A stretch of DNA of 64,000 nt from Oculina patagonica (taxonomy: Eukaryota). The stretch covers positions 19,964,001 to 20,028,000 of the forward strand of contig NC_135770.1 of the NCBI RefSeq assembly GCF_052425735.1. The letters are read 5' to 3'. Positions within the stretch are counted from its first letter, which is position 1. Each line of letters starts with the position of its first letter. Under the pieces are notes generated by a model. The model did no database searches and was not told the origin of the DNA. It saw only the letters and a program-made list of their open reading frames with translations. Both the position numbers and the translations under genes were made by a program. Of this stretch, positions 16,116 through 52,715 are shown piece after piece.

Positions 16116-18489
16116 TTACTCTCGAAATGGTGAGTCTTTAGACAGCAGGAGAGACCATCCTTGAAATGGCTGAACAGACACTGAATCTGAAGTGTCGTCA
16201 GTATGGATGGTAAAACCCGGCATTCCTGCCACAAGTTTGGCAGTGTCAGTCACACCATCCATGTGATTGATGTCGACACCAGCTGGTTTTCTGAGCTGGA
16301 GTGGTAAACTGACCAGGCCGCTCGTCATCTGGCTGATATCCATGTCATCTTTCCTGCCCTCCAAAAACTCGGTTATCCATCCCCTGTAACGATACTTGCC
16401 CTCAATGACCATCCCCGAGCCGTAAGCATTCTCATAAGTGATAACATGACTCCACCATTTCCGATCTGGCTTGCCCTTGTAAGTAGCCAACAATTTGCTG
16501 AACACTAGCTCCACAACATTCCACCACTCTGATGTCAAGCCAAGATTGTACTGTATCGGTTCAAGCAGTGTTCGCAGTACCTTCAGTTTGGATTTTAGTT
16601 TTTTCCAGTCATCTTCAGTGCCTAGCATCTCAATTGCAGGGATTCCGCAACCTCCAAGCATGCTGTAAATAAAATACTCTTGAACTGAATACATCAATGT
16701 GATCTGCGAAACGATCTTCTGTACTGCAGTTGTGGTGCTGAAGTCCGCCGTCATTCCATCCACGAACTCAGGTACTTTGACATTCTCTTGTATTCCCTTC
16801 CCTATTTGATCAAAGAACCAACTGTAGTCAACGGTATAGATGCTTCGATCAGGTACTTCCACTTCAATGGTTTTCTATAATAACAATATTAATATTATTA
16901 ATAAAATGATGATGATGATGGTGTGTCTTAAGTCCAACTTTTTATTATGCAAATTCCGCAAAAACATGTTTTATTGTTTTGTCAACCAACATGGCCGCCT
17001 TGTCACGTGGTTGCAAACCAAGAATTGAATTTTTTCCCGGTTCTCGGTTTCTCGTTCTCCGTTACTCTGTTTAGTAACACCCCTCATGTGTATTTAAAAG
17101 CTTACCTTTCCCTCGTGATCAACAAACATCTTGCGAACGGACTCTTCCTTCGCGTTTCTGTCGATAGCCCCGACGATTCCAATCAATGAGTATCAATAAT
17201 CAATAAAATCAATAGTTATCAATAATAATCAATTGATTGATATTGATTGATATTGATAATCAATTAAAATCAAAGCCGCAATGTTGAGTGATTTTCGATT
17301 TTCATTGATTTTCATTGATTGCCATTGATTGTCATTGATTTCTATTGAAAACTTAAATCGGTTTTATTTTTATTTTTTTTTTTAATAAATCTCACGGACG
17401 AGGACAGAGACCCAATTTTATTTCTGATATCCGATTACTGAAGTAAAGTACCACAGAAACAACAGTAATAATTAACAGTAACTTTTTATTATATTCATTT
17501 CTTTGCTGTATCATCCTATTGACATGTATTGACAACTATTTCAAACATGCATTTCCTGCAATTTAGTTGGTGTGTTCGTTTATATGACATTAACAATAGC
17601 GTTACTCGAACTAGACTTCAATATTGTTTCGTTTTCTCAATTCTAGATAGATCAGTGCAATCAAACAGAAACAATTTAACAATTTAATAAAATTTAACAA
17701 TTTAATAAAATCGACTACACAAGAAATAGAAATCTTCACAGACATGGCGCCGATGATGTGTTTCAGTGTGTTTGCAAACGCGCCGGGAAACGCGTTAAAT
17801 CAAGCAAATGCCTTTGTAGCCGGGTTTTTACTGTTGCACAATCAGCTATTGATTATCAATTAAAATCAATGAAAATCAATGAAATTAAGACGGCTCGGTG
17901 AGTGATTTTCGATTTTTATTGATTATGTAAATTAATCAATATCAATCAATTGATTACTATTGATTAATATTGATTATATTGATTGAAATCAATGATTGAT
18001 TTTCATTGATTGAAATCGTCGGGCGATAGCGCAAGCCACTCGTCTGATAACACTGAACCACCAGTCATCTGGGGAGGTTCGTAATTTCCAGTGGTTGTTG
18101 TAGGCTGTCAGAACGGCAGAAAACAATCCGCAATTTCCAAGCGAATAAATGCTCTCCGTTGATCCCAAGGCGGCAATCATATCTTGTGGAAGAGAGTAAT
18201 TTACCCCCGTATTTGGATGGTAGACAGCTCTTATTTCTCGTTCCGAGGATTGACCCAGCGAGTAATCCTTGATCAACTGTTTTGCTTGGCTGGGTACAAG
18301 TTTGCTGTCTTCGACTTTGACTGGAACCAGATTGATGGCAAGAAGGACAGAATTGACACTCACTCCATCGACCGTGGTGTGTTGACTAATAACAGGAGCC
18401 TTAGCTTTGTTCTTAGCCATCGTGCAAACGGTAAACAAGCAACAGAATTTTCCAACAGTCAGAACAGCCAGAAATCACACTTTGAGCAT
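16116..18489 (-). pseudogene. DUF4419-like copy 1 (two exons, MITE-disrupted, stop in signal peptide)
   Basis: Exon 2 16116-16874; GT-AG phase-0 intron 16875-17105; exon 1 split by a MITE at 17169-18023, and the frame is restored if the MITE and one TSD are removed. Leader reads MLKV*FLAVLTVGKFCCLFTVCTMAKN. Family motifs AYNNHWKLRTSPDDWW, ADFSTTT, CGIP and YRGWITEF are present. Confidence 0.8.
17169..18023. mobile_element. MITE inserted in the copy 1 coding exon
   Basis: TIR cccgacgatt(c/t)caatcaatga, 7-bp TSD cgatagc, subterminal attgat/atcaat arrays. Confidence 0.9.
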
Positions 18490-20519: not shown

Positions 20520-21713
20520 TTAATACTTGCAAAAAGGAGAGTCTTTAGACAGCAGAAGAGACCAGCCTTGGAATGGCTGTACAGACACTGAATCTGAAGT
20601 GTCGTCAGTATCAACGGTAAATCCCAGCATTCCTGCTACAAGTGTGCCACTGTCCTTCACACAGGAGACAGGGTCTTCAATGGTCAGCGGAACAGTAACA
20701 ACACCAGTTGACATGTCGTCAATTTCCAACAGGTCCTTCTTTCCCTCCAAAAACTCGGTAATCCAGCCCCTGTAAGATTTTTGCCCGCCTGACCCAAAAC
20801 TTTCCTGGTAGCTGATAATATGACTCCACCACTCCCTATCTGGTCTCCCGTGGTAAGTAGCCAATAACTCGCTGAAGACTTTCTCCACCAGATCCCACCA
20901 TTCCGATTCCAAACCAAGATCTTTCTCTATCGGTTCAAGCAGTGTTCGCAGTATCTTCAGTTTGGATTTTAACTTGCTCCAGTCGTCTTCAGTGCCTAAC
21001 ATCTCCACTGCAGGGATTCCACAGTCAAGTATCATTTTAAAATGAAAATACTCTTGAACTGAAGACATCAATGTGATCTGCGAAACGATTTTCTGCACTG
21101 CAGTTGTGGTGCTGAAATCTGCCGCCATTCCATCCACGAACTCAGGTACTTTGACATTCTCTTGTATTCCCTTCGCTATTTGATCAAAGAACCAGCTGTA
21201 GTCGACGGTGTAGATGCCCTGGTTAGTTACTTTCACCTCGATGGTTTTCTTTTCTTCGTGATCAACAAACATCTTGCGAACGGTCTCTTTCTTCGCATTT
21301 TTGTCGATAGCGGAGGCGACTCGTTTGATAACACAGAACCACCAGTCATCTGGCGAGGTTCGTAGTTTCCAGTGGTTGTTGTAGGCTGTCAGAACGGCGG
21401 AAAACAGTCCGCAATTTCCAAGTGAATAAACGTTCTCCGTTGATCCCACTGCGGCAATTACTCGATTAGGAGAATCGATTTTACCTAGCATCGAACCTAG
21501 CAGCTTCCTCTCAATCGCTGAGGCTTCGTCATTTGTGTTTTGAGAATCTTGCGCGTACTCGTTGAACAATTCTTTGGCTTGGCTTTGTACAAGCCTGCTG
21601 TCTACAAACTTAGAAGGAACGAGGTTTTCGGCGAGAACAACACAAGTGATTTTCAATCCATCGGCGGTCGTGCGCTGACTGATAAGAGGCGGCTTCGTTT
21701 CGTAGTTACCCAT
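20520..21713 (-). CDS. DUF4419-like protein copy 2, intronless, ~397 aa (starts MGNYETK)
   Basis: Uninterrupted ORF with first in-frame ATG at 21713. Motifs AYNNHWKLRTSPDDWW, FSTTT, CGIP and GWITEF match my recollection of DUF4419 (PF14388); needs an HMM check. Confidence 0.85.
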   Translation of the reverse strand: MGNYETKPPLISQRTTADGLKITCVVLAENLVPSKFVDSRLVQSQAKELFNEYAQDSQNTNDEASAIERKLLGSMLGKIDSPNRVIAAVGSTENVYSLGNCGLFSAVLTAYNNHWKLRTSPDDWWFCVIKRVASAIDKNAKKETVRKMFVDHEEKKTIEVKVTNQGIYTVDYSWFFDQIAKGIQENVKVPEFVDGMAADFSTTTAVQKIVSQITLMSSVQEYFHFKMILDCGIPAVEMLGTEDDWSKLKSKLKILRTLLEPIEKDLGLESEWWDLVEKVFSELLATYHGRPDREWWSHIISYQESFGSGGQKSYRGWITEFLEGKKDLLEIDDMSTGVVTVPLTIEDPVSCVKDSGTLVAGMLGFTVDTDDTSDSVSVQPFQGWSLLLSKDSPFCKY

Positions 21714-22007
21714 CAGTCGGGTGAGGAGCAAGAAAACAAAACACAAGACGAGAGCTACCGAGGACTGATAACGTAGGACTGATAACGTAGAGTGAGAAAA
21801 TATTCACAAAAGGTAGGAGAATTTTTTTATGGAATGAGGTCGACTGCCTGCTCTCGCGGTAGGTACGTTATGTATGGAAATTTTTGTGTCCCCAGATCCG
21901 CTGAGCGAGGTGAGCGCAGGCGATGGATCCCTCCTCGCGTCTCACGTGACCGACCCTGCGTTTTTTCCGCGGTGCCGTCTGAAGTACACCCACGCGACGT
22001 TTATGTG

Positions 22008-24128: not shown

Positions 24129-24487
24129 TATAATATTGTAGTAACTAGGGAAATAAAGTCACGCTATCGTGTTTGCTACACATAATATTTAGAGACTATT
24201 TTAAAACTGGCCATTACGTAAGGCAGCTTTCATTTCGAAAAATAAACTTAACCTTTTAGAATCTGGCTTTAACCACTGGTTAAATTTGTCATAATTGAAA
24301 GCAGCCTCTTGAGTATCGGCAGAATTCAAAGCTTTTGTTGCCTTAATTTTGCCAACTAGTAAAGTCTCTATTTTGTCGTCTGTATGTGCTTAATCCACAT
24401 AAACAAAGCTAGAAATTGTCCAACTGTTTCTTCTGGCAATTCAGATTACGTTGTTTGAATAAGTCTTTGGAGACACGTCGTTGGAGC

Positions 24488-25636
24488 CTACTTGAGAAAT
24501 GGTGAGTCTTTAGACAGCAGAAGAGACCATCCTTGGAATGGTTGTACAGACACTGAATCTGAAGCATCGTCAGTGTGGACAGTGAAACCCAGCATTCCTG
24601 CGACAAGCTTGGCATCATCCTTCACACAAGAGACGGGATCTTCCATGATGAGTGGAACAGTGACAAGGCCAGTCGTCATGTTATAGATTTCCGTGGGACT
24701 TTTCTCTCCTTCTAGGAACTCGGTAATCCAGCCCCTATACCCTGAGGTTCCACCTGACTCCCAAGCACGTTTGTAGCTCATAATATGACTCCACCATTTC
24801 CTATCTGGTATCCCCTGAAAAGTAGCCAGTAACTTGCTGAAGACGTTTCCCACTAGATCCCACTACTCCGATGACAAACCAAGATCTTTCTCTATGGGTT
24901 CAAGCAGTGTTCGCAGTACCTTCAGTTTGGAATTTAATTTGCTCCAGTCCTCCTCAGTGCCTAGCATCTCCAATGCAGGGATTCCGCAGAGAGTCCCCAT
25001 CCTAAAGTCGAAATACTCTTGAACTGCATGCATCAATGTGATCTGCGAAACGATTTTCTGTACTGCAGTTGTGGTGCTGAAATCCGCCGTCATTCCATCC
25101 ACGAACTCAGGTACTTTGACGTTATCTTGTATTCCTGTTGCTATTTGATCAAAGAACCAGCTGTAGTCGACTGTATAGATGCTTGTGTCGGGCACAATCA
25201 CCTCGATGGTTTTCTTTTCTTCGTGATCAACAAACATCTTGCGAACTGACTCTTTCTTCGCGTTTTTTTCGATGGCGCAAGCGACTCGTTTGATAACACA
25301 GAACCACCAGTCATCTGGGGAAGTTCGTAGTTTCCAGTGGTTGTTGTAGGCTGTCAGAACGGCAGAAAACAATCCGCAATCTCGAAGCGAATAAATGTTC
25401 TCAGTTGACCCCAAGGCGGCAGTCATTTCATTAGGACGATCGAATCTGTTCTGTTTTAAGTGTTTTCTTTCTTGCGCGTACTCGTTGAGCAATTCCTTCG
25501 CTTGGCTTTGTACAAGCCTGCTGTCTTCAAACTTAGAAGGAACGAGTTTATTGGCGAGCACGACACAATTGATTTTCAATCCATCGGCCGTCGTTCGCTG
25601 ACTGATAAGAAGCGGCTTGGTTGCGTTGTTGCCCAT
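24488..25636 (-). pseudogene. DUF4419-like copy 3, single nonsense codon
   Basis: TGG>TAG at 24863-24865 (SE*WDLV versus SEWWNLV). The rest is in frame and very close to copy 4. Confidence 0.85.
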
Positions 25637-26523
25637 CGTGTGAGGAGCAAGAAAATAAAACACACCACGGAAGCTACCGGGGGCTGATAATGTAGAATGA
25701 GAAATTATTCAAAAAGCTTTTAAATATTCACAAAAGGTTTCAGGAGAAATGTAGTTGAAAACACCACACGCAGCCACGCGCACAGTTCTGACTTCCTCCT
25801 GTCCGCTGAGCGAAGTGATTGCAGGCGATGGATCCCTCGCTTTCGCGTGACCCACCATGCGTGTCCCTGCGTGAGCCGAAATTAGTCGACTAGACACACG
25901 CGACGTTAGACTTGCCCCAAGTCGCTCGTTTTTTAATCGGGCGGGGCCTGGGCCCGATTCATAATCTGCACAGAATTTTTAACCGGGTGGGGGTCTGTGC
26001 CCCCCGGTTCATAATCTACCTTCGGTTTTTTTTTTTTTAGTTTTTTTGTCGGTAGGGCATTGAAGGTCACGCATGTTGATTGGCTTAAAACAGGTCATCT
26101 TTCATCACCCACTGAAATGCCAGTGGAGGAAGGAGGGGAGGGGAAATGTTTTAATTACTTGCCACTTGAGGGATTAAAATTACGTGCGTTATACGCGTTT
26201 TCCGTGTGTTTAACTCAACAACAAATCATCGCTTAGACCACAGAGCAAAATAGAATTGCTGCTCAGTTAGAAATGACCGAATATATGAGAGTCAAGTTAT
26301 ATATTATGCGTTTTAAAAGTAGAACGAAAACAACTCTGATATCTCTACCTTCAAAGTCTTCAAAAGCGATCAAAGTGCCTTTGACCTTTAACACTGATGG
26401 CCGAGTATCGTATATCGCATGTCACGCTTCAACATAACGCACTTCTTGTTGAACAGCAACAAAAGGAAATAAAACGCTACTGGGTATACGTCTAAAAGCC
26501 TTAGGCTTTCTTGTTAGCTAAAA

Positions 26524-26553
26524 CATAGTTAGTAGAGGTGACTACTAACTATG
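26524..26553. mobile_element. 30-bp TIR-only remnant (P-element-like excision footprint)
   Basis: Perfect 12-bp TIR catagttagtag/ctactaactatg around a 6-bp spacer, with a 7-bp TSD gctaaaa. Confidence 0.75.
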
Positions 26554-30923: not shown

Positions 30924-33734
30924 TTACAACAACAACAATTTATTGAGGTATTTCCATAAAAATACATGGCATTACCTACTTACACTTGAGAAATTACAAG
31001 TAGTATCAGAAATAAAACAAAAATGCGATTTTATCATTTGGAAAATAAAGTTTCATGTCTAAGAGACATAGCTTGAAAAACAAAAGCAGCAGTTGATCGA
31101 CAAACAGCAGGATCAATGCTGTTACAAAGAAATAAAGATTTTGCATTAATATCAAACTCGTTAAAAATACTATATTTGGCGGTTATTTCATTAAAGAACT
31201 TTAAACGTATGTTTTCGTATAGCTTGCATGAAAATAAGAAATGCATTTCGTTTTCAATTTCATCCGAATGGCAGAAAGAACAGATTCTCAAATTAATAGG
31301 AGTCTTGGGTATTGTGTGTCTACCAGTTTCGATACGTAATTTGTGATTCCCAAGTCGAAATTTGCTAATGGCAGTTCTGTGGTGAGGATTGTTGATTGCG
31401 TCCAGAAAACTAGATTTTTTGGTATCTTTTTTAAATGAATGATAAAATTGTAATTTTCTGTTTGTGCTAATTAGTTTTAGTTGATGAGCTATTAACGCTT
31501 TGCTAATGTTTTGCTTAATGTAAGAAGTAAAGAGTTTTCCGTTGTTTTCATTTAATATTAAAGAGCTCGAGTTGTATTTATTGCATAACTGATTCATTTT
31601 AAGCATTAGACCTGTCTGGGTTTTATCAGCCATCTCCTTAGAAAGCTGTAGACATTGCTTAGCGATGTTATTTTCTGGTAAGCTCTGAAGATGAATCCAA
31701 AATTTTACTATGGAGGTTTCGATGGCTAATTTTAGAGGAAGCCTTCCAAGTTCATTTCTGGTTGCAACATTTGGGCATTGTTTATTCACTCCTAAGAATT
31801 GTTTGCAAAAATATATGTGTGTTTTTTCGATGTCATCTTTCTCCCAATTGTTGAAATCATCTTTATCGTAGATACCCCAAACTTCTGAGCCGTACAGTAA
31901 AATAGGGAGAAAGAGAGAATCAAAGAGTTTATTTGTGACACTAAGGGACAATTTTGAAAAATCCAAGTAACGGCGAGTAGCAAAGATGGATCTTCTTGTT
32001 TTATCTTTTAAGTTTGATTTACAGTCTCTAAAGCTTCCGTTTGCAGAAAAATTTATACCAAGATAAGTGTAATTGTTGACAATTTCAATTTTGTCATTGT
32101 TTATATGAAAATAATGCTTGTCGAGTAAAGATTTCCTGCATTTCTTTTGGAAGATGACAACTTTCGTTTTCTTTGGATTAACGGACAGCAGCCAATCGTT
32201 ACAGTATTTTTCAAGAATGGAAAGTGCCTTCTGCAGACCTTTAGCTGAGTGAGAGATTAATACTAAGTCGTCTGCGTAAAGTAAACAGTTTAAATTGGAG
32301 CCGTTAGGTAGAGCGATAGGATCTGTGTCTTCTCGGTCTAGTAAAAAAGGGATTTCATTTAAGTATAAATTAAATAACATGGGCGACAGAATGCAGCCTT
32401 GACGTACACCTTTCTGATAATCGAAAAATTCAGTCCTTTGGTCACCATACTTAACAGAACATTTAGTTTTTGAGTAAAGATTTTTAATCAAATCATAGAA
32501 ATTTCCACCAATCTTATAATGTAAAAGTTTGTAGAATAGTCCATCATGCCAAACCGAATCAAAAGCTTTCTTGAAGTCAATAAAACAAGTGTACAGTTTG
32601 CCTCTTGCTGTATGACTGACATATTTATCCACTAATGTTCTTAGGGTAAAAATATGATCTGATGTGCGATGATTAGGTAAAAAACCGATTTGAGCTTGAT
32701 GTAATATGTTTTGTTGAAGTACATGATTTTTCAACCTGGCATTGAGGACCGAGGTAAAAAGTTTTCCGAGACAGCTACTAATGCATATTCCCCTGTAGTT
32801 AGAAGGGTCGTTTTTATTTCCCGATTTATAAATTGGTGTAATTAATCCTTCGCACCAAGTGCTAGGAAAGAAACCGCTTTTCAGAATAAGATTAAATAAT
32901 TTGCAAAGGGCAGTGATAAAATATTGCATTCCAGCTTTTAGCATTTCATTGCGAATCTTGTCAGGACCGGGGACTTTCTTTGATCGAAGTAATTTTGTCA
33001 TAGATTCTATTTCAGCAGGTGTAATAATTGTATCTAAATAATTGTGGGTGGTTTTTGTTTCTTCTAAGCTGAAGAGTTTCTCCCCTAAAATATTATTGCG
33101 AGGTAATAATGATGAGGTATTTATGGACGAATGTAAATCTTGAAAATGGTGATACAACTTGTCAACAGGAATATCATGATTGTTGGAAGGGGGGTTGTGG
33201 CCTTCCTTCATTAATTTGAGGTTATCCCAAAATTTATGACTGTCTTTGTGATTAACAAGGTCTTCAATTTGGGAATTGAGATGTTTCGATTTTTTGTACT
33301 TAATCAATTTCTTGAATGTTTTGCGAGTCGTATGGTAATCATGTCTAAGTTTTGCATCGTAAGGATTTCTATGTTTTTGGTTGGAAAGCATACTGAGATT
33401 CTTTCGCAGAAGTGCACAGTCTTTATCAAACCATAAGTTATGTTTCTTTGTTTTCTTTTTAGGACAAGCGATTTTGAGAGATCGTAAACATGTATCAGTT
33501 ATGATTTTAGTGAATTGTTCTGTTGCCAAATCAATTCCTTTACAATCAAAGGTAAAGTTAGTCTTCTCAAAGTTCGATAGACGTAAAAGAACGTCATCTT
33601 GTTTTAAGGCATTGCGAAAATTTTCAAAGGATGATTGATCCCAGATGAACTGTTTTGGATTATTGAAAGTTTTTACATTTGTATGACTGGTAGTTTTGGA
33701 AGAGGCTGGTGTTTGGAGATTTAACCAGCAGATG
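30924..33734 (-). mobile_element. 5'-truncated non-LTR retrotransposon (probably RTE-X-like clade)
   Basis: Open ORF2 from the end of the endonuclease through RT; 3' aataaa followed by a (TTG)n tail at ~30924-30943. No clear TSD. Confidence 0.88.
31034..33529 (-). CDS. LINE ORF2 reverse transcriptase with C-terminal CCHC zinc knuckle (5'-truncated; frame open to ~33730)
   Basis: PGPDKI, NYRGI, FIDFKKAFDSV, GVRQGCILSP, LLYADD, YLG and HKLRIETGRH...CSFC...HFLFSC motifs with no stops over 831 aa. Confidence 0.9.
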   Translation of the reverse strand: MATEQFTKIITDTCLRSLKIACPKKKTKKHNLWFDKDCALLRKNLSMLSNQKHRNPYDAKLRHDYHTTRKTFKKLIKYKKSKHLNSQIEDLVNHKDSHKFWDNLKLMKEGHNPPSNNHDIPVDKLYHHFQDLHSSINTSSLLPRNNILGEKLFSLEETKTTHNYLDTIITPAEIESMTKLLRSKKVPGPDKIRNEMLKAGMQYFITALCKLFNLILKSGFFPSTWCEGLITPIYKSGNKNDPSNYRGICISSCLGKLFTSVLNARLKNHVLQQNILHQAQIGFLPNHRTSDHIFTLRTLVDKYVSHTARGKLYTCFIDFKKAFDSVWHDGLFYKLLHYKIGGNFYDLIKNLYSKTKCSVKYGDQRTEFFDYQKGVRQGCILSPMLFNLYLNEIPFLLDREDTDPIALPNGSNLNCLLYADDLVLISHSAKGLQKALSILEKYCNDWLLSVNPKKTKVVIFQKKCRKSLLDKHYFHINNDKIEIVNNYTYLGINFSANGSFRDCKSNLKDKTRRSIFATRRYLDFSKLSLSVTNKLFDSLFLPILLYGSEVWGIYDKDDFNNWEKDDIEKTHIYFCKQFLGVNKQCPNVATRNELGRLPLKLAIETSIVKFWIHLQSLPENNIAKQCLQLSKEMADKTQTGLMLKMNQLCNKYNSSSLILNENNGKLFTSYIKQNISKALIAHQLKLISTNRKLQFYHSFKKDTKKSSFLDAINNPHHRTAISKFRLGNHKLRIETGRHTIPKTPINLRICSFCHSDEIENEMHFLFSCKLYENIRLKFFNEITAKYSIFNEFDINAKSLFLCNSIDPAVCRSTAAFVFQAMSLRHETLFSK

Positions 33735-34240: not shown

Positions 34241-35803
34241 ATGGAGTCTTCGCAATTTGTTGCCGTTTATTTTTGTTATATTTCAATCTTGCTTTCTGTC
34301 AAGCCTTGCTTGTCGAACTACACGGGTGCAGTTTACGAGCATGTTACATTCTTTGTCGTTGAAAACAAGACTGAGTTAACTCGCCCAGCAGCCTTGGAAA
34401 TTATGAAAAAGAACCTCGATGTTTACCAAACACAGGCAGTCCTGGCAAAATCCAAGGGTGCCGACATCATAGTCTTTCCAGAGGATGGTTTGTATGGCTT
34501 TGACTTTACACGCGAACAAATCTTTCCTTTTCTTGAAATTATCCCGGATCCATCAAAGCTGGAAAAAAGTTGGATTCCCTGCACAGATCCCGATCGTTTC
34601 GACAACACTGAAGTGTTAGGGGAGCTGAGCTGCATTGCTCAAAACTCTTCCATTGCGGTGGTTGCTAACATGGGCGATGTGCAGTATTGTGACAAGTCGG
34701 ATCCACACTGCCCCGAAGATGGCAGATACCAGTTTAACACTGATGTGGTCTTCGATACAGACGGCACATTACTAGCAAAGTACCACAAGCAACACTTGTT
34801 TCACGAAGATCAGTTCAACACTCCTCAGAAAGTAGAAATCGTGATTTTTAAGACGTCGTTTGGTGTGACGTTTGGAGTGTTCACTTGTTTTGACATGCTT
34901 TTCTATGATCCTGCTATTGTGCTTGTCGAGAAGTTTGGTGTTCGCAACATTGTGTTCCCAACTGCATGGATGGATGGATTTCCCATCCTGGCCTCAGTAG
35001 AGTATCAACAGGCATGGTCAATATTGACATGTGCCAATCTTCTAGCAGCCAATCAGCATGTACCCCGGTTGGATATTGTTGGGAGTGGGATTTACTCTTG
35101 CGGAGAAGCATTATCGTATGTCTATGACTTGAAGACCGATGAAGGGCATCTTTTGGTGGCAAGTTTGCCTAACTTAGAGATGCACCCAAAACTACCTCTG
35201 GAGCATGACACCTGTCAATCAAACAATGTGCAATCTAATTTGCCACTGTATGATATGAAGCATGAATCCTGTCAATCAAAGAATGTGCCATTCAACTTGC
35301 CAGCGAATGACATCAAACAGGCAAGATCAATCTTTCATTCGAAGCTGCTTCATGACATCTACACGTTCGTCAAAATTGATGGTGCTGAGGGCAATGCTTC
35401 AGTTTGTGCTAATGAGTTTTGCTGCTATGCAAGTTACACCTTGCCAAGTCAGCAACCTTTGGATAATGAACTTTTTGCATTAGGAGCTTTTAACGGACAC
35501 CATGACTCATACAGCTACATCATCCAGGCTTGTGTTTTGATAAAATGCAACAGCATGTTGAAAGATTCCTGTGGGACGGCGACGCTAACTTCATCAACAA
35601 TATTCAATTCATTCCAGCTAATGGGGAACTTTTCATCAAAGGCTTATGTATTTCCTGAGGTTCTGGCATCCAATGTGGAGCTAATCGCAGCGAAGGAAAT
35701 CTCAATCTCTGGGAATGTTAATATGAGTGTAAACTCATTTGAAAAACCTTTGCTGTCAGCTGTTCTTTTTGGCCGGATTTATGAGCTTGATCATGTTGAA
35801 TAG
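34241..35803 (+). CDS. VNN: Vanin/pantetheinase-biotinidase family amidohydrolase (nitrilase fold), secreted, single coding exon, 520 aa
   Basis: Hydrophobic signal peptide, then AVYEH, IIVFPEDG (Glu), YHKQHLF (Lys), FTCFDMLF (Cys) and FPTAW, followed by a Cys-rich base domain ending LFGRIYE. No hydrophobic GPI tail. Confidence 0.93.
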   Translation: MESSQFVAVYFCYISILLSVKPCLSNYTGAVYEHVTFFVVENKTELTRPAALEIMKKNLDVYQTQAVLAKSKGADIIVFPEDGLYGFDFTREQIFPFLEIIPDPSKLEKSWIPCTDPDRFDNTEVLGELSCIAQNSSIAVVANMGDVQYCDKSDPHCPEDGRYQFNTDVVFDTDGTLLAKYHKQHLFHEDQFNTPQKVEIVIFKTSFGVTFGVFTCFDMLFYDPAIVLVEKFGVRNIVFPTAWMDGFPILASVEYQQAWSILTCANLLAANQHVPRLDIVGSGIYSCGEALSYVYDLKTDEGHLLVASLPNLEMHPKLPLEHDTCQSNNVQSNLPLYDMKHESCQSKNVPFNLPANDIKQARSIFHSKLLHDIYTFVKIDGAEGNASVCANEFCCYASYTLPSQQPLDNELFALGAFNGHHDSYSYIIQACVLIKCNSMLKDSCGTATLTSSTIFNSFQLMGNFSSKAYVFPEVLASNVELIAAKEISISGNVNMSVNSFEKPLLSAVLFGRIYELDHVE

Positions 35804-36097: not shown

Positions 36098-36156
36098 AAT
36101 ACTGACTGTATTTTAAGAATAGTTATCTTAATAAATTAGCTTTTAAATGTAATTTA

Positions 36157-39532: not shown

Positions 39533-42500
39533 CTCTATCTCTATATCTCTCCATGCCATAAAGCACATAAGGCTTTGGCATTCTCTTTCCACCCACTACG
39601 ATTTGCTGCAAGGGCTCTGACATTCGCCCATGACTGCCACCCAGCTGTTTGCCTTTCATCTTCAACCATCCTCCTCCATGTTGTTTTCGGTCGACCCGGT
39701 CTTCTTCTCCCTTCTGGCCTCCACTCCAAAGCTGTGACACAATGTTCCTCTCTGCCTTTCCTCATTGTATGACCAATCCAGTTCCATCTTCGGCGTCTGA
39801 TCTCATCGCTCGTTCTGTTCACTCCTGTATTCTCCTGGATTTGTTGGTGGGATATGGTCTGAGGCCACCTTATTCTTAGAATCCTCTTCATGCACTTGTA
39901 TTTGAAACCGTCCAGCTTCTTTGCTTCTGTTTTCGTAAGTTTCCAAGCCTCACATCAATACATCAAAACTGACCTAACAATTGTTTTAAACAATTGTACC
40001 TTCGTCTTCCTTCCAATCTCACTGGTGTCCCATAATCTTCGCATCCTATAGAAAGCCTGTCTAGCTTTACTTAGCCTATGTCCTTGGTTGTACCGCCTTC
40101 TTTGTCCACCAATGCACCTAAGTACACAAATTCTTCCACCTCATCTACCTGCTCAACATTAATCTCTAGTCGTTGGTCGTTTCTGGCATTCACTCGCATG
40201 ACTTTTGACTTCTTGCATTGACCTTAAGACCGACTCTTGCAGCTTCATCGACTAGCCTGCTGGTCTTATCTCTTATGTCGATGTACCTGGACGACAACAA
40301 AGCGATGTCGTCTGCAAAGTCCAGGTCTTCTAAGACCGAGGTGAACTTCCATCGTATACCAGTTCTTCTACCTTCCGTAGACCTGCTCATGACCCAGTCA
40401 ATTGCAAGTAGAAATAGGAAACCAGACATGACGCATCCTTGCTTTACTCCTGACTGGACTTCACTAAGCCGCGGTATTGCAGAATATACAGATTAGACAA
40501 ATGTCAATTTACAATGTTATATATTGTGTATAAATTTACGTTGGTGTCTATTCTCGAAATTACCATTACATACACTCTGTATACACTTTTGACTTTAGAC
40601 GTAAATAGACGTCTAAAGTGTATAATTATACACTTTATACACAATAGACAGAATAGACACGAGGATATAGAGTCAAGACCGAGAATATACACTTTATACA
40701 CTTTTGCCTTTAGACGTATAATAGACGTCTAAAGTGTATAATTATACACTTTATACACAATAGACAGAATAGACACGAGGATATAGAGTCAAGTCTGAGA
40801 ATATACACTTTATACCCTTAGGTATGTTGTAGAAGCTTTTGACTTTAGACGTATAATAGACGTCTAAAGTGTATAATTATACACTTTATACACAATAGAC
40901 AGAATAGACACAAGGATATTGAGTCAAGTCCGAGAATATACACTTTTGACTTTAGAAACATAGTAGATGTCTAAAGTGTATATTATTTTCGGACTTGACT
41001 CAATATCCTCGTGTCTATTCTGTCAATTGTGTATAAAGTGTATAATTATACACTCTAGACGTCTATTATACGTCTAATGTCAAAAGTGTATAAAGTGTAT
41101 ACTGATATACTTCGTTTTTTGAAAAATAACACTATACACTTTTGACTTTAGACATCTAATAGACATCTAAAGTGTATAATTATACACTTTCTACACAATT
41201 GACAGAATAGACATGGAGATGTAAGGTTAAGATTGAGAATATACACTTTATACAGGTTTGACATTAGACATCTAATAGACATTTAAAGTGTATAATTATA
41301 CACTTTATACACTTTATACAGAATAGACATGGAGATATTTGGTTAAGATTGAGAATATACACTTTATACAGGTTTGACATTAGACATCTAATAGACGTCT
41401 AAAGTGTAAAAAAACTTGTGCAGAATATACAGAATAGATAGCTCGTGTTAAGAGTGTATAAATATACAGCAATAGACATATATTGTTGTATAATTATACA
41501 CTTTATACCTCAGAGATATAAACTGTCTATTCTGCAATACCGGGCCTCACTCCTGAACTTGAAACCATTCTGTTGTTCCACCCTCATCCAAGACTGCGCA
41601 TTCGAAGTTGTTGTACATCGCCTTCACCAATGCGATAAGCTCTTCTGGGATTCCGTACATTGACATGATGTTCCACAGACTTTCTCTATGTACAGAATCG
41701 AATGCTTTCTCAAAGTCTATGAAATGGGTGTACAGAATTGCGCTCCATTCGTTGACTTGTTCCAGTATGTTCCTGAGAGCAAAGATCTGATCAATGGTAC
41801 TTCTGTTCTCTCGAAAGCCTGCTTGTTCCTTCCTCAGGATGTTGTCAACACCATTTTTGATTCTACTTATCAACACTCTTCCAAAGATCTTACTGATAAC
41901 TGGTAACAGCGTAATGCCCCTCCAATTCGTACACTCGCGTAGGTCCCCCTTCTTGGGTAACTTTACTATCAATCCTCTATTCCAGCTTTTTGGTACTACG
42001 CCCTTTTCCTTCACCTTGTTAAACAGCTTTGTCAGCTCCTTTGTTCTCTCATCTAGATCTGTTTTCAGGAGTTCTGCTACTACGTTATCAAGTCCAGCTG
42101 CCTTCCCATTTTTCGTTGATTTTATAGCTCTTTTCACTTCGGCTGGTTGAAATGGTCCAGTGTCAAATTCTATGTCATTTTGCCTTCTTTCCAATTCATG
42201 GGGCTAAATAGGACTTTCAGGTGGTTCTTTGTTGAGTACTGCCTCAAAGTGTTCTTTCCAGATCTTCAGTCTTTCACTCCCCTCATTTGTCGGTCTTCCG
42301 TTTTTATCGTTTACTGCTGTACTCGCTCCTTTCTTCTCACCCGTCAAGGTCTTCACTATTCGATGTAATTCCCCAGTTCTTCCATTTTCTGCCGCTCTCT
42401 CAGCATTGCCTGCCATCTCATTCAACCAGCGCCTCTTGCCTTCACGTGCACTCCTTTTCACTTCCCGGTCCTTTCCCTTATACTGCTCCCTTATTCTTTG

Positions 42501-43910
42501 TTTGACTCTTTCTGAACGTGTACTTTCGAGCTTCAGTTGTCTCCTTTCTTCTACTTTCTTCCACGTTCCTCCACATAACCAAGGTTTACTTGACCTCTTG
42601 GCTGTGCCCAGTACCTCTTTAGCAGTTGCAACATAGATGTTCTCCATTCTGTTGTTCTTTTGATCGGCATTTTCTTCTTCTTCCAATCCTTCTAGGACCT
42701 GGAATCTGTTTCTGACCTCAATGTTGGATTTGTTGCGTATTTCTTCATCTGCCAGTTTTTGCATGTCAAATCTTGTTCGACCTTCCTTTTCCCTTGGGCT
42801 TCTCTTTAACTTCAGCTTAAGCCTAGTCTCCACTAGATAGTGGTCACTTCCCACGTCTGCACCTCGCCGAACTACAGTGTTCATGACTGATGATCTATAT
42901 TCCTTAGCAATCATTGTGTGGTCTATCTGGTTTTTAGTTCTGCCGTTTGGTGATGTCCATGTTGCTTTATGAATTTCCTTATGGGGGAAAATCGTTCCTG
43001 TAATGACTAACCCGTTCATCTCACAGAACTCACACAGCCTTTCACCATTTTCATCCCTGACTCCTGTGTCATGTTGTCCCATCACTTCTCTTTCTTCAGT
43101 TGATCCTTTCCCTACTGTAGCATTAAGGTCTCCAGTAATAATCAGGATGTCGTGTAATTCTGTTGCATTTTTGTACCGTACTTTCTAGTTGCTCGTAGAA
43201 TTCATCTTTGCTCTCCACGCACGCGTCATTGGTCGGGGAGTATACATGTATCAATGTCAGTTTCCTATACTTTGAATAGAACCTTGCCCTGATGATCCTA
43301 CTACTTTCGGGTGTCCACTCCATAAGGCATTTAGCCGCTTGCTGGGACATCATAATTGCCACGCCTCCTTGATGAATCTCTTCACCACCGCTGTAAATTA
43401 TTACCTGCCCTGTGCTAAGTTTTGATTTTCCGCTTCCTCTCCACCTGCATTCGCTAATACCCAGAATATCCAGCTTATATCTTTCCATCTCTCTTGCTAC
43501 TTGGCCAGCTTTTCCGGTCTCAAACATTGTTCTAACGTTCCAATTTCCTATCCTGGTTTCGAGCTTCGGATTCACGATCGAAGCTATCGGCCTTTGGGTT
43601 TCATTTCGGCTTTGACCCAAATGCGTCATTCTGCTACTATGGGCCCTCGTCGCTTCACCGATGTTGGTAGTAATTTGAATGTCATCCGTTTCTGTAATAA
43701 ATTTGTTTTTTACAGGAGTGGTTATCAACCCCCAGCCCAACACCCAACCTGGAGGACCAGGGAGGTCACACTTCGTCTGGTCTCTACCCTTCGACCTGTT
43801 CGGCATGGGTGACCCTGCCAGGAGTACAAGACTCCAGCCGATATAGCTCTAAGGGTCACTGAGACACACAAACCATCCCACCGCGATAAGGTGGTGACCC
43901 CATGGGATAG
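39533..43910 (-). mobile_element. Full-length but frameshifted RTE-clade LINE
   Basis: 14-bp TSD gactttgtccccat (39519-39532, 43911-43924). EN fragments (IGNWNVRTM, LGISECRW, NQIDH, GSDHYLV), RT (FIDFEKAFDSV, GVKQGC, LDFADD), C-terminal GRRRPGRPKTTW, short microsatellite tail. ORF pieces at 43123-43806, 42204-43085, 41547-42194, 40190-40429 and 39541-39891. Confidence 0.93.
40468..41545. repeat. TIR element filled with a ~116-135-bp tandem repeat, inserted in the RTE RT domain
   Basis: cggtattgcagaata / tattctgcaataccg ends. Units contain the palindrome aaagtgtataattatacacttt; one unit is inverted at ~40985-41100. Confidence 0.85.
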
Positions 43911-45970: not shown

Positions 45971-46030
45971 ACAAGCCATTTCCTTTATTCAGTTTAAAGT
46001 TTTTGTTGCCTTGTTTTGCTCACTAGTGTA

Positions 46031-46220
46031 CAGTCAACTCTCTCTGAAATGGACACCTGGGACCGGCTCCAACTGTCCATCTTAGAGAGGTGTCCGTCGT
46101 CTTTTTAGTGAGTTTAGTTACAGTAAAATGGCTGAAGAACGGCAGGGACGGGACCAACACCAGGTGTCCGTCTTATGGAGGTGTCCGTCTTATAGGTATC
46201 CATTAAGAGAGAGTTGACTG
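46031..46220. mobile_element. Short pogo/Tigger-like MITE in the copy 4 3' UTR
   Basis: cagtcaactctctc / gagagagttgactg with TA TSD. Confidence 0.85.
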
Positions 46221-46279
46221 TAATCACTATTCTGCCCTATTTGAACAATCTGTCCAGCTGTTAATGAGTCTTCAGGAGC

Positions 46280-47428
46280 TTACTTGCAAAATGGGGAGTC
46301 TTTAGACAGCAGAAGAGACCAGCCTTGGAATGGCTGTACAGACACTGAATCTGAAGTGTCGTCAGTGTGGACAGTGAAACCCAGCATTCCTGCGACAAGC
46401 TTGGCATCATCCTTTATCCTAGACACGCGATCTTCAATGATGAGTGGAACAGTGACAAGACCAGTCGTCATGTTATAGATTTCCGTGGGACTTTTCTCTC
46501 CTTCCAGGAACTCGGTAATCCAGCCCCTGTACCCTGAGGTTCCACCTGACTCCCAAGCACGTTTATAGCTCATAATATGACTCCACCATTTTCTATCTGG
46601 TATCCCCTGGTAAGTAGCCAGTAACTTGCTGAAGACGTTTTCCACTAGATTCCACCACTCCGACGTCAAACCAAGATCATTCTCTATGGGTTCAAGCAGT
46701 GTTCGCAGTACCTTCAGTTTGGAATTTAATTTGCTCCAGTCGTCCTCAGTGCCTAGCATCTCCACTGCAGGGATTCCACAGAGAGTCCCCATCCTAAAGT
46801 CGAAATACTCTTGAACTGCATGCATCAATGTGATCTGCGAAACGATTTTCTGTACTGCAGTTGTGGTGCTGAAATCCGCCGTCATTCCATCCACGAACTC
46901 AGGTACTTTGACGTTATCTTGTATTCCTGTTGCTATTTGATCAAAGAACCAGCTGTAGTCGACTGTGTAGATGCTTGTGTTGGGCACAATCACCTCGATG
47001 GTTTTCTTTTCTTCGTGATCAACAAACATCTTGCGAACTGACTCTTTCTTCGCGTTTTTTTCGATGGCGCAAGCGACTCGTTTGATAACACTGAACCACC
47101 AGTCATCTGGCGAGGTTCGTAGTTTCCAGTGGTTGTTGTAGGCTGTCAGAACGGCAGAAAACAATCCGCAATCTCGAAGCGAATAAATGTTCTCAGTTGA
47201 CCCCAAGGCGGCTATCATTTCATTAGGACGATCGAATCTGCTCTGTTTTATGTTTTCTCTTTCTTGCGCGTACTCGTTGAGCAATTCCTTCGCTTGGCTT
47301 TGTACAAGCTTGCTGTCTTCAAACTTAGAAGGGACGAGTTTTTTGGCGAGCACGACACAAGTGATTTTCAATCCATCGGCCGTCATGCGCTGACTGATAA
47401 GAGGCGGCTTGGTTTCGTTGTTGCCCAT
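46280..47428 (-). CDS. DUF4419-like protein copy 4, intronless, ~382 aa (starts MGNNETK)
   Basis: Uninterrupted ORF with all family motifs; ATG at 47428. Confidence 0.88.
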   Translation of the reverse strand: MGNNETKPPLISQRMTADGLKITCVVLAKKLVPSKFEDSKLVQSQAKELLNEYAQERENIKQSRFDRPNEMIAALGSTENIYSLRDCGLFSAVLTAYNNHWKLRTSPDDWWFSVIKRVACAIEKNAKKESVRKMFVDHEEKKTIEVIVPNTSIYTVDYSWFFDQIATGIQDNVKVPEFVDGMTADFSTTTAVQKIVSQITLMHAVQEYFDFRMGTLCGIPAVEMLGTEDDWSKLNSKLKVLRTLLEPIENDLGLTSEWWNLVENVFSKLLATYQGIPDRKWWSHIMSYKRAWESGGTSGYRGWITEFLEGEKSPTEIYNMTTGLVTVPLIIEDRVSRIKDDAKLVAGMLGFTVHTDDTSDSVSVQPFQGWSLLLSKDSPFCK

Positions 47429-47429
47429 C

Positions 47430-50400
47430 GTGTGAGGAGCAAGAAAACAAAACACACCACGGAAGCTACCGGGGACAGATAATCAAGAAAGTCAGCTCAG
47501 TTCGAGGTCGTCGAGAGTATTTAAGGCATTCACTGCTGCTTAAAACGCTTTGAGGACTTTTTAGACTTTTTAGACGTCCAAACACGGATGTCTTATTGGT
47601 CATGTTACAGTATCTAATAATAAATATTACGACATAAAATTTAACCACGTATAAGGTCGGGACGTGACTAGTCGACAGGTTTCTGCGACAAGTCGTGTGT
47701 ACTGCTTCAAGCCGCTGTCACAAGGCGCTTGACACACAGCGAATTTTATTTGGAATAGTGGGAATATGAACTAAGTCTACACACGCTGCGTCAACCTGCT
47801 TTCGCTCATTTTGTCGCTGCTACCAGTCGCACGAATTCAAACTGGGTTGAATTCCTGCGACTGATCGCAGCGACAAAATTCTAATTCAAGAGAGTAGCAT
47901 TTAATTTCAGATCGAATGAAAGAAGTGTTTTACCGTTGCGAGTATTTTTCAGTTTGCTGGTTCGTCTTAATTTTCTATGGGAACACTTATAGCAACACTA
48001 AACTTTACAGGAGAAAGTTGTCATGATCTGATGAAAGACCTGACAGTGTTTCCCGTCGCAGCGCGATTATACGGCACGTGATTCATTAATTATCTTTATG
48101 TCGCAGACTTTTGCCACGCTATCACGTTTGCTAAACAAAACTTGAAATCCTTAGATGTAGTTGGTGATCTGTTCGATATAGTTAAGTACTGTAATGTCTA
48201 AAGTCAAAGCCGGCCTTAACATATGTCTTGCTAGAAAACGGTAGTACGTGATGCACTTAATGTGAATATTTGGACCTTTACCACTAAACTGAAACTACTT
48301 CCTGTTAATTAAACGTGGAAGAAATATCTACGACGATCTGTTCGCTAGAGTTAAGTACTGTACTGTCCGAAGTCAAAGTAGGTCTTAGTTTGCGTACGTG
48401 ATGCACTTGAAAGTAAATATTTGGGCCCTCTAGCTCTCTGCATGCTAAACTACTTCCGCGTGTAACAGGAAGTAGTAGCTAGAAACGCTTCGCGTGATGA
48501 AATGTCTTGTTTTGACAGCTTAGAAGACCAATACCTTAACTCAGCCAATGAGAATGTTTTTTGCCGGTCCAATATTTCGAATTAAAGCATAGACGGCAAC
48601 TCACTTGCAAATTATTCGTTTCTAATTATCAATGAGTCAGCAATTTCGACATAAGCCTACCGCTATATATAGAAAGCTGGTGTACCTACTAAAAACTAAA
48701 AACTAAAAAGAACTTAAACTTAGTATGTGTGGGCTGTGGTATTGCTTGAGGGATACTCCCCATGTAGAAGCTATAGCTTTTAGTAATTAGTCTCTGAAAG
48801 TCACGCTGTTGTGTTCGCTACACATAATATTTAGGGACTTCAAGCAACCATGACAGCGACGCTGAGGACAACGTTCATTAAAATATGAATTACTTTACCT
48901 TCGAATCTTGCGCGATAATCTAGATCCATTCTGTTTATCTATAATGGTTAGAGCTATTTCAGAACTGGATATAATGTAAGACAGCGTTCATGTCGAAAAA
49001 GAAAGTTGACCTTTTTTTAGTTTTTGTCATAATTGAAAGCAGCCTCTTGAGTATCGACAGAATTGAAAGCTCTTGTTGCCTTTCTTTTGCCAACTAGTAC
49101 AGCCACTATTTTGTCGTATGCATGTGCTTAATCTACATAAACAAAGCTAGGAATTGTTCAACTGTTTCTTCTGGCAACTTCAGATTACGTTGTTTGTATG
49201 AATAATTCCAGTAAGTCTACGGAGTTTTCTTAAGAAATGGCGAGTCTTTAGACAGCAAAAGAGACCAGCCTTGGAATGGCTGTACAGACACTGAATCTGA
49301 AGTGTCGTCAGTGTGGATAGTAAATCCCAGCATTCCTGCTACAAGCTTGGCTTCATCCTCCACGCAAGAGATGGGATCTTCAATGGTGAGTGGAACAGTG
49401 ACAAGACCAGTTGACATTTGATTGATTTGCATGAGGTCTTTCATTCCCTCGAGGAACTCGGTAATCCAGCCCCTGTACCCTGAGTCATCACCTGACTTGA
49501 AAGCTTCTTTGTAGCTCATAATATGACTCCACCATTTTCTATCAGGTATCCCCTGGTAAGTATCCAGTAACTTGCTAAACACTTTTTCCACTAGATTCCA
49601 CCACTCCAATTCCAAACCAAGATCGTTCTCTATGGGTTCAAGCAGTGTTCGCAGTACCTTCAGTTTGGATTTTAGTTTGCTCCAGTCGTCCTCAGTGCCT
49701 AGCATCTCCACTGCAGGGATTCCGCAGCGAGTCGTCATCTTAAATTTGAAATACTCTTGAACTGAAGACATCAATGTGATCTGCGAAACGATTTTCTGCA
49801 CTGCAGTTGTGGTGCTGAAATCCGCCGTCATTCCATCCACAAACTCAGGTACTTTGACGTTCTCTTGTATTCCCTTCGCTATTTGATCAAAGAACCAGGT
49901 GTAGTCAACGTTATAGATACTTCTCTCAGGTACTACCACATTGATGGTTTTCTATAATAACAATTTTAATATTAATAACATTAATAATTGATGATGATGA
50001 TGATGATATTAAAATAAACAGATACAGCATTAATAAAAATTTAAAAAAAATTACGTAAGATTAACCTTACGAAATTATTAAATTTTAAAAACACAGTGAC
50101 ATTGTACACTAATGAATGACTGTTTCCAAAGGAAACAGCTAATTTTGTTTCCTGAGAATCTAAATGTTTCCCGAGGCGAAAAGGGAAACAAAATTAACTG
50201 CTTTCCTGAGGGATCAGTCATTAAGTGTTTTATTATATAGCTCGTTGGTCAACATTTGTGGGCAACATTGTAATGTTACCCTCTGACGTCAGAGATTTTG
50301 GCGGGAAACAGTTTGGGAAACTTTCAACCTCGTTCCCAGGGCTTTTCCCTGGAAAAGGGAAACTTTTAGCGGAAAACAGCCTTTTTAATTCTACAATGTC

Positions 50401-52715
50401 ATGTGACCTCGAACAAGCCAATAACAGCGCGCCCTGTTGGGAAAAATTCTAAATATTATAACGATAACACTTAATGAAAAGGCTCATATAATTTATAAAT
50501 TAAAAGCTAACCTTTCCCTCGTGATCAACAAACATCTTGCGGACGGACTCTTTCTTCGCGTTTCTGTCGATGGCAGAGGCGACTCGTCTGATAACACAGA
50601 ACCACCAGTCATCTGGTGAGGTTCGTAGTTTCCAGTGGTGGTTGTAGGCTGTCAGAACGGCAGAAAACAATCCGTAATCTCCAAACGAATAAACGTTCTC
50701 CGTTGACCCCAAGGCGGCTATCATTTCATTTGGACGATCGAATCTGCTCTGTTTTATGTTTTCTCTTTCTTGCGCGTACTCGTTGAGCAATTCTTTGGCT
50801 TGGCTTTGTACAAGCCTGCTGTCTTCAAACTTCGAAGGAACGAGTTTTTTGGCGAGCACGACACAATTGATTTTCAATCCATCGGCCGTCGTTCGCTGAC
50901 TGACATAAGGCGGCTTCGTTTCGTTGTTGCCCATCGTGTGAGGAACAAGAAAACAAAACACACCACGGAAGCTACCGGGGACAGATAATGAAGAAAGTCA
51001 GCTTAGTTCGAGGTCTTCCAGAGTCCAGGGTCCAGAGTATTAAAAAGGTTCACTGCTGCTCAAAACGCTTTAAGGACTTTTTAGACGTCCAAACACGGAC
51101 GTCTTATTGTCTTGTTACAGTGTCTAATAATAAATATTACGACATAAATTTTAACCACGTATTAGGTCGGGACGTGACTAGTCGACAGGTTTCTGCGACA
51201 AGCCGCTGTGACAAGGCGCTTGACACACAGCGAATTTTATTTGGAATAGTGGGAATATGAACTAGTTTTCTAATTAACTATGGCAAAAATACATAAGTCT
51301 GCACACGCTACGTCAACCTGCTTTCGCTCATTTTGGCGCTGCTACCAGTCGCACGATCGCGAATTCAAACTGGGTTGAATTCCTGCGACTGATCGCAGCG
51401 ACAAAATTCTAATTCAAGATAGCAGATTATTGTTATGTCATTTAATTTCAAATCGAATAAAAGAAGCGGCCATTGCGAGTATTTTTCAGTTTGCTGGTTC
51501 GTCTTTATTTTCTATGGGAACACTTATACCCACACAAAACTTTACAGGAGAAAGTTGTCATAAACTGATGAAAGACCTGACAGTGTTTTCCGTCGCAGCG
51601 TGATTATACCGAACGTGATTCATTAATTATCTTATGTCGCTATCACGTTTGCTACCCAAAACTTGATTTCCTTAGATATAGTACGGTGATCTGTTTGCTA
51701 TAGTTAAGAACTGAAATGTCTAAAGTCAAAGCCGGCCTTAACATATGTTTTGCTAAAAAACGGTAATACGTGATGCACTTGATGTGAATATTTGGACCTT
51801 TACCTCTAAACTGAAACTACTTCCTGTTAAACGCGGAAGAAATATCTGCGACGATCTGTTCGCTATAGTTAAGTACTGTATTGTCTAAAGTCAAAGCCGG
51901 CCTTAACATATGTTTTGCTAGCGAACAGTAGTACGTGATGCACTTGAAAGTAAATATTTGGGCCCTCTAGCTCTCTGCTGAACTTCTTCCTGTTACACGC
52001 GGAAGTAATAGCTTGAATCTCCTTGGGTGATGAAATATCTTGTTTCGACAGATTAGAGGACCAATAATTTAATTCAGCCAATTAGAATGTTTTATTGCCA
52101 GGCGGCAACTGATTTGCAGATTATTCGTTTCTAATTATCAATGAGTGAGCAATTTCGACATAAGCCTACCGCTATATATAGAAAGCTGGTGTACCTACTA
52201 AAAACTAAAAAGAACTTAAACTCAGTGTATGTGGGCTGTGGTATTACTTGAGGGATACTCTTCTTATAGAAGCTATAATATGGTAGTAATATGGCAAATA
52301 AAGTCACGTTATCGTGTTCGCTACACATAATATTTAGAGACTTCAAGCAACCAGGACAGCAACGCTGAGGACAACTTCGATTAAAACTGAGTTATTTTAC
52401 CTACGAATCTTTCTCGATAATCTAGATCCATTCTGTTTATCTATCATTGTCAGAGCTATTTCAAACCTGGATATTATGTAACACAGCGCTCATGTCGAAA
52501 AAAAACTTTTTTGAATTTCGCTTGAATCAATTCGTGATAATTGAAAGCAGCCTCTTGAGTATCGGCAGAATAGTGAAAGCTTTTGTTGCCTTTATTCTGC
52601 CAACTAGTACAGCCACTATTTTGTCGTATGCCGCTTAATTTACATAAACAAAGCTAGGAATTGTTTAACTGTTTCTTCTGGCACCTCAGATTATGTTGTA
52701 TGTATGAATAATTCC
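47430..52715. repeat. Duplicated intergenic spacer (47430-49215 versus 50935-52715) defining a ~3.5-kb tandem unit
   Basis: Collinear, highly similar non-coding sequence including an internal ~170-bp dimer. Partial copies at ~23250-24480 and ~60860-62350. Confidence 0.9.
49217..50934 (-). CDS. DUF4419-like protein copy 5, two exons, ~385 aa (starts MGNNETK)
   Basis: Exon 1 50512-50934 (...VDHEGK), GT-AG phase-0 intron 49952-50511, exon 2 49217-49951 (KTINVVVPERSIY...). The spliced frame is open. Confidence 0.85.

Follow-up and report, generated by a model that had tools for sequence, protein, structure and literature searches.

A young spliced intron shared by non-sister DUF4419 paralogues in a coral tandem array shaped by gene conversion

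In the scleractinian coral Oculina patagonica, an intron present in only a few members of a tandem array of otherwise single-exon DUF4419 genes has a distribution that was set by gene conversion and not by the duplication tree of the array. The stretch analyzed here, hereafter the window, comprises 64,000 nt (positions 19,964,001 to 20,028,000 of NC_135770.1) of a chromosome-scale contig, C13, in a genome of 529 Mb, and tblastn finds eight DUF4419 copies on its minus strand, which we number c1–c8; further copies, including the intron-bearing c9 and the intronless c13, lie beyond it. The intron is carried by c1, c5 and c9, is removed from c5 transcripts and lies inside a segment of coding sequence in which the relationships among copies change partners. 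The primary role of gene conversion holds whether the intron was copied between paralogues or erased from most of them. Between these two histories, we lean toward a single gain followed by transfer of the intron between the c5 and c1/c13 lineages by gene conversion.

The preliminary description of this sequence had placed a phase-0 GT-AG intron with homologous ends at HEGK|KTI in the first and fifth copies, and its coordinates prove accurate. The c1 intron (16875–17105, minus strand; 231 bp, GTAAGC...TTATAG) is predicted from sequence, and the c5 intron (49952–50511, minus strand; 560 bp, GTTAGC...TTATAG) is precisely removed in transcripts. Both break the coding sequence (CDS) between the AAG and AAA lysine codons of CAC GAG GGA AAG | AAA ACC. 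The six other window copies are contiguous across this position, nt 450/451 of the CDS of c4, which served as the alignment anchor and the reference for CDS numbering; as had also been claimed, they include c6, with the identical context GAGGGAAAG|AAAACC. Both introns have the features of the U2-type GT-AG class (GTAAGC/GTTAGC ... TTGTTATTATAG, with a pyrimidine-rich 3′ region), and in unspliced c1 and c5 a TAA is reached four codons into the intron.

The introns of c1 and c5 are homologous at their 5′ ends, GT(A/T)AGCTTTTAA... (GTWAGCTTTTAA), and at their 3′ ends, ...(CAT)5...ATTAATATT(A/-)A(T/A)ATTGTTATTATAG. They differ in length because different miniature inverted-repeat transposable elements (MITEs) landed in each: the left half of a ~175-bp element at nt 79–170 of the c1 intron (16936–17027, minus strand), and dispersed MITE-like repeats, with visible inverted repeats, at nt ~34–416 of the c5 intron (50096–50478, minus strand). 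The repeat-free cores of 139 and 177 bp align with a score of 107.5, against 43.7 ± 7.4 for shuffled sequences, and the alignable ends are ~90% identical, in agreement with the silent divergence of 0.12 in the surrounding coding tract described below. Genome-wide, these ends are confined to c1, c5 and c9, and the sole full-length match of the c1 intron is itself. Because the ends are homologous and confined to these three copies, the introns share a single origin.

Two independent insertions of one mobile intron-generating element, such as an introner or a MITE, at the same site of two paralogues are so improbable that we give this reading almost no weight. Transposon sequence does lie within both introns, and the A-rich run at the insertion site could be a preferred target. 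However, the repeats are nested, interior and of different families, homologous ends are restricted to c1, c5 and c9 across the genome, and the same position, phase and orientation would have had to recur. The c5-intron repeats, with 406 candidate matches genome-wide, belong to another family than the c1-intron MITE, which has at least 242 candidate copies at 95–99% identity; full elements of ~175 bp have long inverted ends (L035–L043), and the MITE nested in c1 is very young and of high copy number.

An introner or transposon origin was likewise considered and rejected. Whole-intron searches of the genome returned only the nested repeats, and the repeat-free cores matched only c1, c5 and c9, apart from multi-register AT/CAT low-complexity sequence and a short GA-rich match on contig C9. 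Within the 88-kb extended array, blastn with the cores likewise recovered nothing beyond the introns. The intron termini have no inverted repeats, and the junctions show only a 2-nt AG overlap with no further target-site duplication. A unique core with neither terminal inverted repeats (TIRs) nor a target duplication means that this is not an introner. The locus resembles introner systems in combining recent intron gain, an aquatic host and MITE sequence inside introns, but its core is confined to three copies of one gene family and its MITEs are secondary nested insertions of two families.

The intron is spliced in c5 and c9. Reads were examined over one stretch, 46200–52199, which contains c4 and c5. 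Contigs from two probable RNA runs of different studies, X1 and X2, join 49951 directly to 50512, skipping exactly 560 nt, and the plus-strand borders CT..AC read as GT..AG in the sense of the gene. The joint is covered to a depth of 188 in X1 and 42.5 in X2, with exon depths of 60–416; the repeat-free part of the intron is covered at 0.7 in X1 and 2–4 in X2, that is, <1% of exon depth in X1 (in the repeat-free part) and ~5% in X2. Coverage in X2 is patchy and transcript-like. Contigs from a DNA-like run, X15, pass from the c5 intron into both exons. A poly(A) run, X23, had no read anywhere on the 6-kb stretch and hence provides no test.

Several array members are pseudogenes and c1 carries a transposon, so it might be argued that the interruptions are disrupting insertions in decaying genes and that the joined contigs derive from an intronless DNA allele or copy, the more so as the run type of X1 and X2 is guessed. 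A 66-mer of the spliced form, however, has no contiguous match above 86% anywhere in the genome, which identifies the joined form as a product of splicing rather than another copy of the gene; the nearest intronless paralogue to it, c6, has 9 mismatches in 60 flanking positions. Besides the low intron depth and transcript-like coverage, the coding capacity also argues against disruption: both c5 exons (exon 1, 50512–50934, MGNNETK…VDHEGK; exon 2, 49217–49951, under RNA-like contigs; both on the minus strand, within a tblastn span of 49229–50961) are open, and splicing restores the frame to give a full-length 381-aa DUF4419 protein. The GenBank model ACROYT_G040972 (P0002, 381 aa) has the same junction in c9. 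We consider disruption very unlikely, and the absence of spliced reads, which the preliminary description had named as the result that would reduce both interruptions to simple insertions, is not what the c5 contigs show. About 1.45 kb of sequence 3′ of the c5 stop codon (47772–49229) is 85% conserved with the region 3′ of c6 (51294–52731); RNA-like contigs cover it as deeply as they do exons, an indication of a long 3′ untranslated region within the duplication unit.

The intronless state is ancestral. None of the 16 outgroup copies spanning the site is interrupted there; they comprise ten from the syntenic array of Desmophyllum pertusum, three from Orbicella faveolata, one from Nematostella vectensis and two from another coral. 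In O. patagonica, a genome-wide six-frame search, together with 24 kb of adjoining sequence that extends the array to 88 kb, revealed more copies beyond the window. About 14 further O. patagonica copies and fragments spanning the site are contiguous, and no genome copy besides c1, c5 and c9 is interrupted there. Because all 16 outgroup copies and the other Oculina paralogues are intronless, the intron was gained on the Oculina lineage; outgroup intron status, which the preliminary description had proposed as a check, is thus uniform. Outside Oculina, the spliced c9 protein had no match above 75–76% identity, which precludes a finer date for the gain.

Two of the outgroup copies deserve separate mention. 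One Desmophyllum copy (L054:14617–15509) has lost 1 nt from the A-run (GGAAAGAAAACC) that holds the Oculina intron site, so that the run may be a fragile spot. The Nematostella DUF4419 homologue (L073:5001–6185) is a single exon nested in an intron of a RecQ-type helicase gene.

Evidence for gene conversion comes from a swap of partners across the intron site. Over most of the gene, the nearest copy to c1 is c13 (86–93% identity in nt 1–450 and 85% in nt 801–1173), and the nearest to c5 are c3 and c4 (93–94% in nt 1–230); c1 stands out as the most divergent of the window copies. The affinity of c5 with c3 and c4 and the divergence of c1 agree with the preliminary description. In sliding windows, identity between c1 and c13 falls from 95% to 78–83% in nt ~391–590 and returns to 90–93% thereafter. 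Over this interval, c1 matches c5 best and c5 matches c1 best, at 90–92%, and c13 instead matches c4, L007 and L008 at 92–94%. The approximate mosaic tract of c1, in which its likeness to c13 ends, covers CDS nt ~393–648 and the intron (16677–17163, minus strand), and that of c5, in which this copy is no longer like c3/c4 and is nearest to c1, covers CDS nt ~396–540 and the intron (49862–50566, minus strand). Maximum chi-square tests by permutation support comparable tracts in three copies, each at p<0.002: nt 393–634 for c1 against c13/c5, nt 396–540 for c5 against c4/c1 and nt 398–527 for c13 against c1/c4. Given this exchange of partners, gene conversion around the intron site is well supported.

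Trees built from separate sections of the gene tell the same story. Outside nt 391–590, the maximum-likelihood tree contains a c1+c13 clade with support of 100/99, and a c1+c5+c9 clade is rejected by the approximately unbiased (AU) test (p = 1e-47 for nt 591–1173; 2e-4 with outgroups). Inside the tract, it is c1+c13 that is rejected (AU p = 0.0004; 0.013 with outgroups), and the intron state requires one change on the tract tree versus two on the tree of the rest of the gene. Copies c1 and c5 therefore do not form a clade across the gene; such a clade would have undermined the preliminary description, and its argument that a single gain on a simple duplication tree is insufficient, with gene conversion or repeated precise loss required in addition, is borne out by a mosaic tract that spans the site.

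Third-position differences before, in and after the tract follow the same pattern: 0.27, 0.12 and 0.35 for c1–c5; 0.10, 0.26 and 0.19 for c1–c13; 0.08, 0.32 and 0.15 for c5–c4; and 0.29, 0.10 and 0.33 for c13–c4. The corresponding differences from Desmophyllum are 0.20–0.38. At third positions of the tract, c1 and c5 are reciprocal nearest neighbors, differing at 6 of 50. Neither copy resembles its own relatives within the tract.

Conversion of c13 is the best supported of the events at this site, and at least two conversions are needed under any scenario. The c13 tract (nt ~264–594) is a haplotype of the c4/L008/L007 type (p = 0.0008), with 2–5 third-position differences in 50. Conversion of c13 by an intronless donor of the c4/L008 type means that a mechanism of precise "loss" operates across the intron site. 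An all-pairs scan similar to GENECONV found significant fragments in nt ~264–650 for many pairs. A central haplotype, 'EVIVP(D/N)TS', at CDS nt ~264–600 is common to c3, c4, c8, c13, L007, L009 and L008, which are distant from one another elsewhere in the gene; L007 and L009 lie at 18.5 Mb on C13, 1.5 Mb away, and L008 lies on contig C12. Such sharing points to either long-range homogenization or strong constraint that confounds the test.

The specific link between c1 and c5 within the tract is moderately supported, and a number of observations weigh against our preferred history. The best tract tree joins c1 with c5/c9 weakly (ultrafast bootstrap 52–61, Shimodaira–Hasegawa-like approximate likelihood ratio test 85–87), and the boundaries of the tree partitions were set after the sliding windows had been viewed. 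The next-nearest copies to c1 and c5 differ at 8–10 of 50 third positions, a small margin, and the tract holds one exclusive c1+c5 synapomorphy, at nt 495. On the tract tree, c1 is roughly as near to the Desmophyllum copies as it is to c5. A Sawyer-type test of c1–c5, a pair named in advance, gave p = 0.03 uncorrected; in the all-pairs scan, c1–c5 was outside the top pairs and was not significant after correction for 91 pairs. With regard to splicing, the type of X1 and X2 ("RNA?") is the tool's guess.

In an alternative history, the intron is older, was already present within Oculina when the c1/c13 and c5 lineages still shared an ancestor, and was erased repeatedly, with c1 and c5/c9 as the survivors. 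Either intronless paralogues acting as conversion donors or reverse-transcript-mediated loss could account for the erasure, and the conversion seen in c13 would remove an intron precisely. The intronless central haplotype common to c3, c4, c8, c13, L007, L008 and L009 across distant clades fits such a process, and most of the c1–c5 similarities in the tract are shared ancestral states. On the other hand, ~6–10 independent precise losses would be needed on the rest-of-gene tree, including losses in c2, c6, c12, L006 and L010, which lack the shared central haplotype, and in the whole Desmophyllum clade. On this tree, the split between c1/c13 and c5 is at least as deep as the split from the Desmophyllum copies, all of which are intronless. 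The third-position divergence between c1 and c5 in the tract is well under that of the flanks, and the intron ends retain ~90% identity. We infer that c1 and c5 share the intron by transfer rather than by retention of an older intron; since the c1–c5 link is moderately supported, transfer is favored only somewhat, and an older intron with repeated erasure is a possible but less probable history. Of the choice posed in the preliminary description, between conversion that moved the intron and repeated loss, the part that invokes conversion stands, and the decision between moving and erasing is partly resolved.

Under the favored history of gain and transfer, a U2-type GT-AG intron would have arisen once in the Oculina lineage, in a single copy of a DUF4419 tandem array whose genes originally had one exon. 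It would have entered an A-rich run at the boundary of two lysine codons, from source DNA that was non-repetitive; the insertion is precise, and neither direct repeats nor donor sequence were found. A short gene-conversion tract may then have copied the intron across two distant lineages, those of c5 and of c1/c13, in either direction, taking along ~60 nt of upstream and 100–200 nt of downstream exon. Later, the tract in c13 would have been overwritten by an intronless donor of the c4/L008 type, different MITEs would have entered the two introns and a transposon would have entered exon 1 of c1. A very recent recombination-mediated duplication of 7.2 kb would then have produced c9, the third intron-bearing copy. 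As to the fuller claim that the intron is younger than the Oculina–Desmophyllum split, arose de novo from non-repetitive filler DNA and was then copied by a tract of ~0.4–0.8 kb, we consider the chances about even.

Recent gains of introns are uncommon in animals, and debate over the mechanisms continues. This locus combines a young, transcript-supported intron, an ancestral state that is clearly intronless, sister copies with and without the intron and conversion tracts visible across the site, and it offers a usable natural example of a new intron spreading, or being erased, within a gene family. If de novo gain and transfer are both correct, a proposition on which we are evenly balanced, it would be among the very few documented events of 'intron transfer', in a metazoan and with transcript support. 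Its value is that of a case study and not of a new principle. A sequence search of the PDB with the DUF4419 protein gave no meaningful match, and the literature on DUF4419 contained mentions in passing only.

The locus adds a further case to a known model and introduces no new mechanism. Intron transfer is one of seven mechanisms of intron gain, for which three unambiguous events were known in 2012, and it accounts for the propagation of introns and not for their origin (PMC3443670). It was proposed for the globin genes of Chironomus by Hankeln et al. 1997, as reviewed in PMC3443670. As in that case, some non-sister genes of a cluster share a homologous intron at one and the same position, the family being otherwise without introns, the relatives are intronless, and the flanking exon has a history different from that of the rest of the gene. 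Unlike the Chironomus case, the host here is a coral and the family is DUF4419, the exon-flank support for the specific c1–c5 link is modest, and one of the two carriers, c1, is now disrupted by a transposon and probably a pseudogene. For intron loss, the model of Derr and Strathern 1993, as cited in PMC3443670, invokes gene conversion with intronless copies or reverse transcripts. The conversion of c13, the sister of carrier c1, by an intronless donor exactly across the site is like that model and would be a loss if c13 had once possessed the intron; a gene with one intron precludes assessment of any 3′ bias or of the loss of adjacent introns.

Recombination in the array is ongoing. The array runs past the window and has at least 14 copies or fragments, among them c9 (L031:2606–4335), which bears the same 560-bp intron, and c13 (L032:5370–6559), the intronless sister of c1, which has frameshifts. 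Copies c9 and c10 duplicate the pair c5 and c6, c11 consists of a 5′ fragment, c12 seems to be contiguous and further fragments are present; more paralogues lie at 18.5 and 19.5 Mb on C13, with one on C12. The duplicated block of 7.2 kb (49128–56369, equal to 66499–73739 of the extended array, or L031:2499–9739) is 99.9% identical over 6.6 kb, and 92 of its 98 differences fall in the first 600 bp, the 3′ part of the CDS. Such packing of differences places a recombination breakpoint inside exon 2. The right end of the block abuts the truncated c11 (CDS nt 3–503), which suggests insertion into, or recombination with, a pre-existing copy. Copy c9 might be an assembly artefact; its differences from c5 are concentrated in a 600-bp patch, and it has its own annotated protein.

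The first copy in the window has been interrupted a second time. The tblastn span of c1 is 16116–18441, and all of its parts lie on the minus strand: exon 2 (16116–16874; tblastn aa 151–389, frame -3) is open to the stop codon, with an open reading frame (ORF) at 16116–16862; the final 63 nt of exon 1 (17106–17168) end in …AIDRNAKEESVRKMFVDHEGK; and the 5′ part of exon 1 runs from the ATG at 18024–18420. Between the two parts of exon 1, sequence inspection reveals an 855-bp non-autonomous TIR element (17169–18023), with a 21-bp TIR, CCCGACGATT(T/C)CAATCAATGA, an intact 7-bp target duplication, GCTATCG, and internal (ATCAATNN)n-like repeats. This insertion is recent and truncates the c1 ORF, and because of it c1 is probably a pseudogene.

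The remaining window copies, all on the minus strand, vary in their state of preservation. Intact single ORFs are found in c2 (20520–21746; 408 aa, tblastn span 20526–21713), c4 (46280–47455; 391 aa, tblastn span 46283–47455) and c8 (62360–63787; 475 aa, tblastn span 62426–63568), all three intronless; c4 and c8 match Pfam PF14388 (DUF4419; E 3e-59, 201 bits versus a cut-off of 25). The intronless c3 (24488–25663; tblastn span 24491–25663) has a single in-frame TAG. Frameshifts and insertions break c6 and c7: c6 (52719–54434; tblastn span 52731–54434) has a frameshift and an insertion of ~545 bp away from the intron site, and the degenerate c7 (58320–60147), contiguous at HEGR|KTI, has a 778-bp insertion (58846–59623) four codons 3′ of the intron site that is unrelated to the intron.

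Other genes and repeats are interspersed with the array. A Vanin/biotinidase-like gene (34241–35803, plus strand; CN_hydrolase + Vanin_C domains in a single 520-aa ORF) adjoins the DUF4419 copies, and the presence of a Vanin-like gene beside the array of another coral as well (L074:20197–21155) indicates that the locus is syntenic. Two non-LTR retrotransposon remnants lie between array members on the minus strand (31034–33529 and 41547–43806), one of them an 831-aa reverse-transcriptase ORF and the other a series of endonuclease/reverse-transcriptase ORFs.

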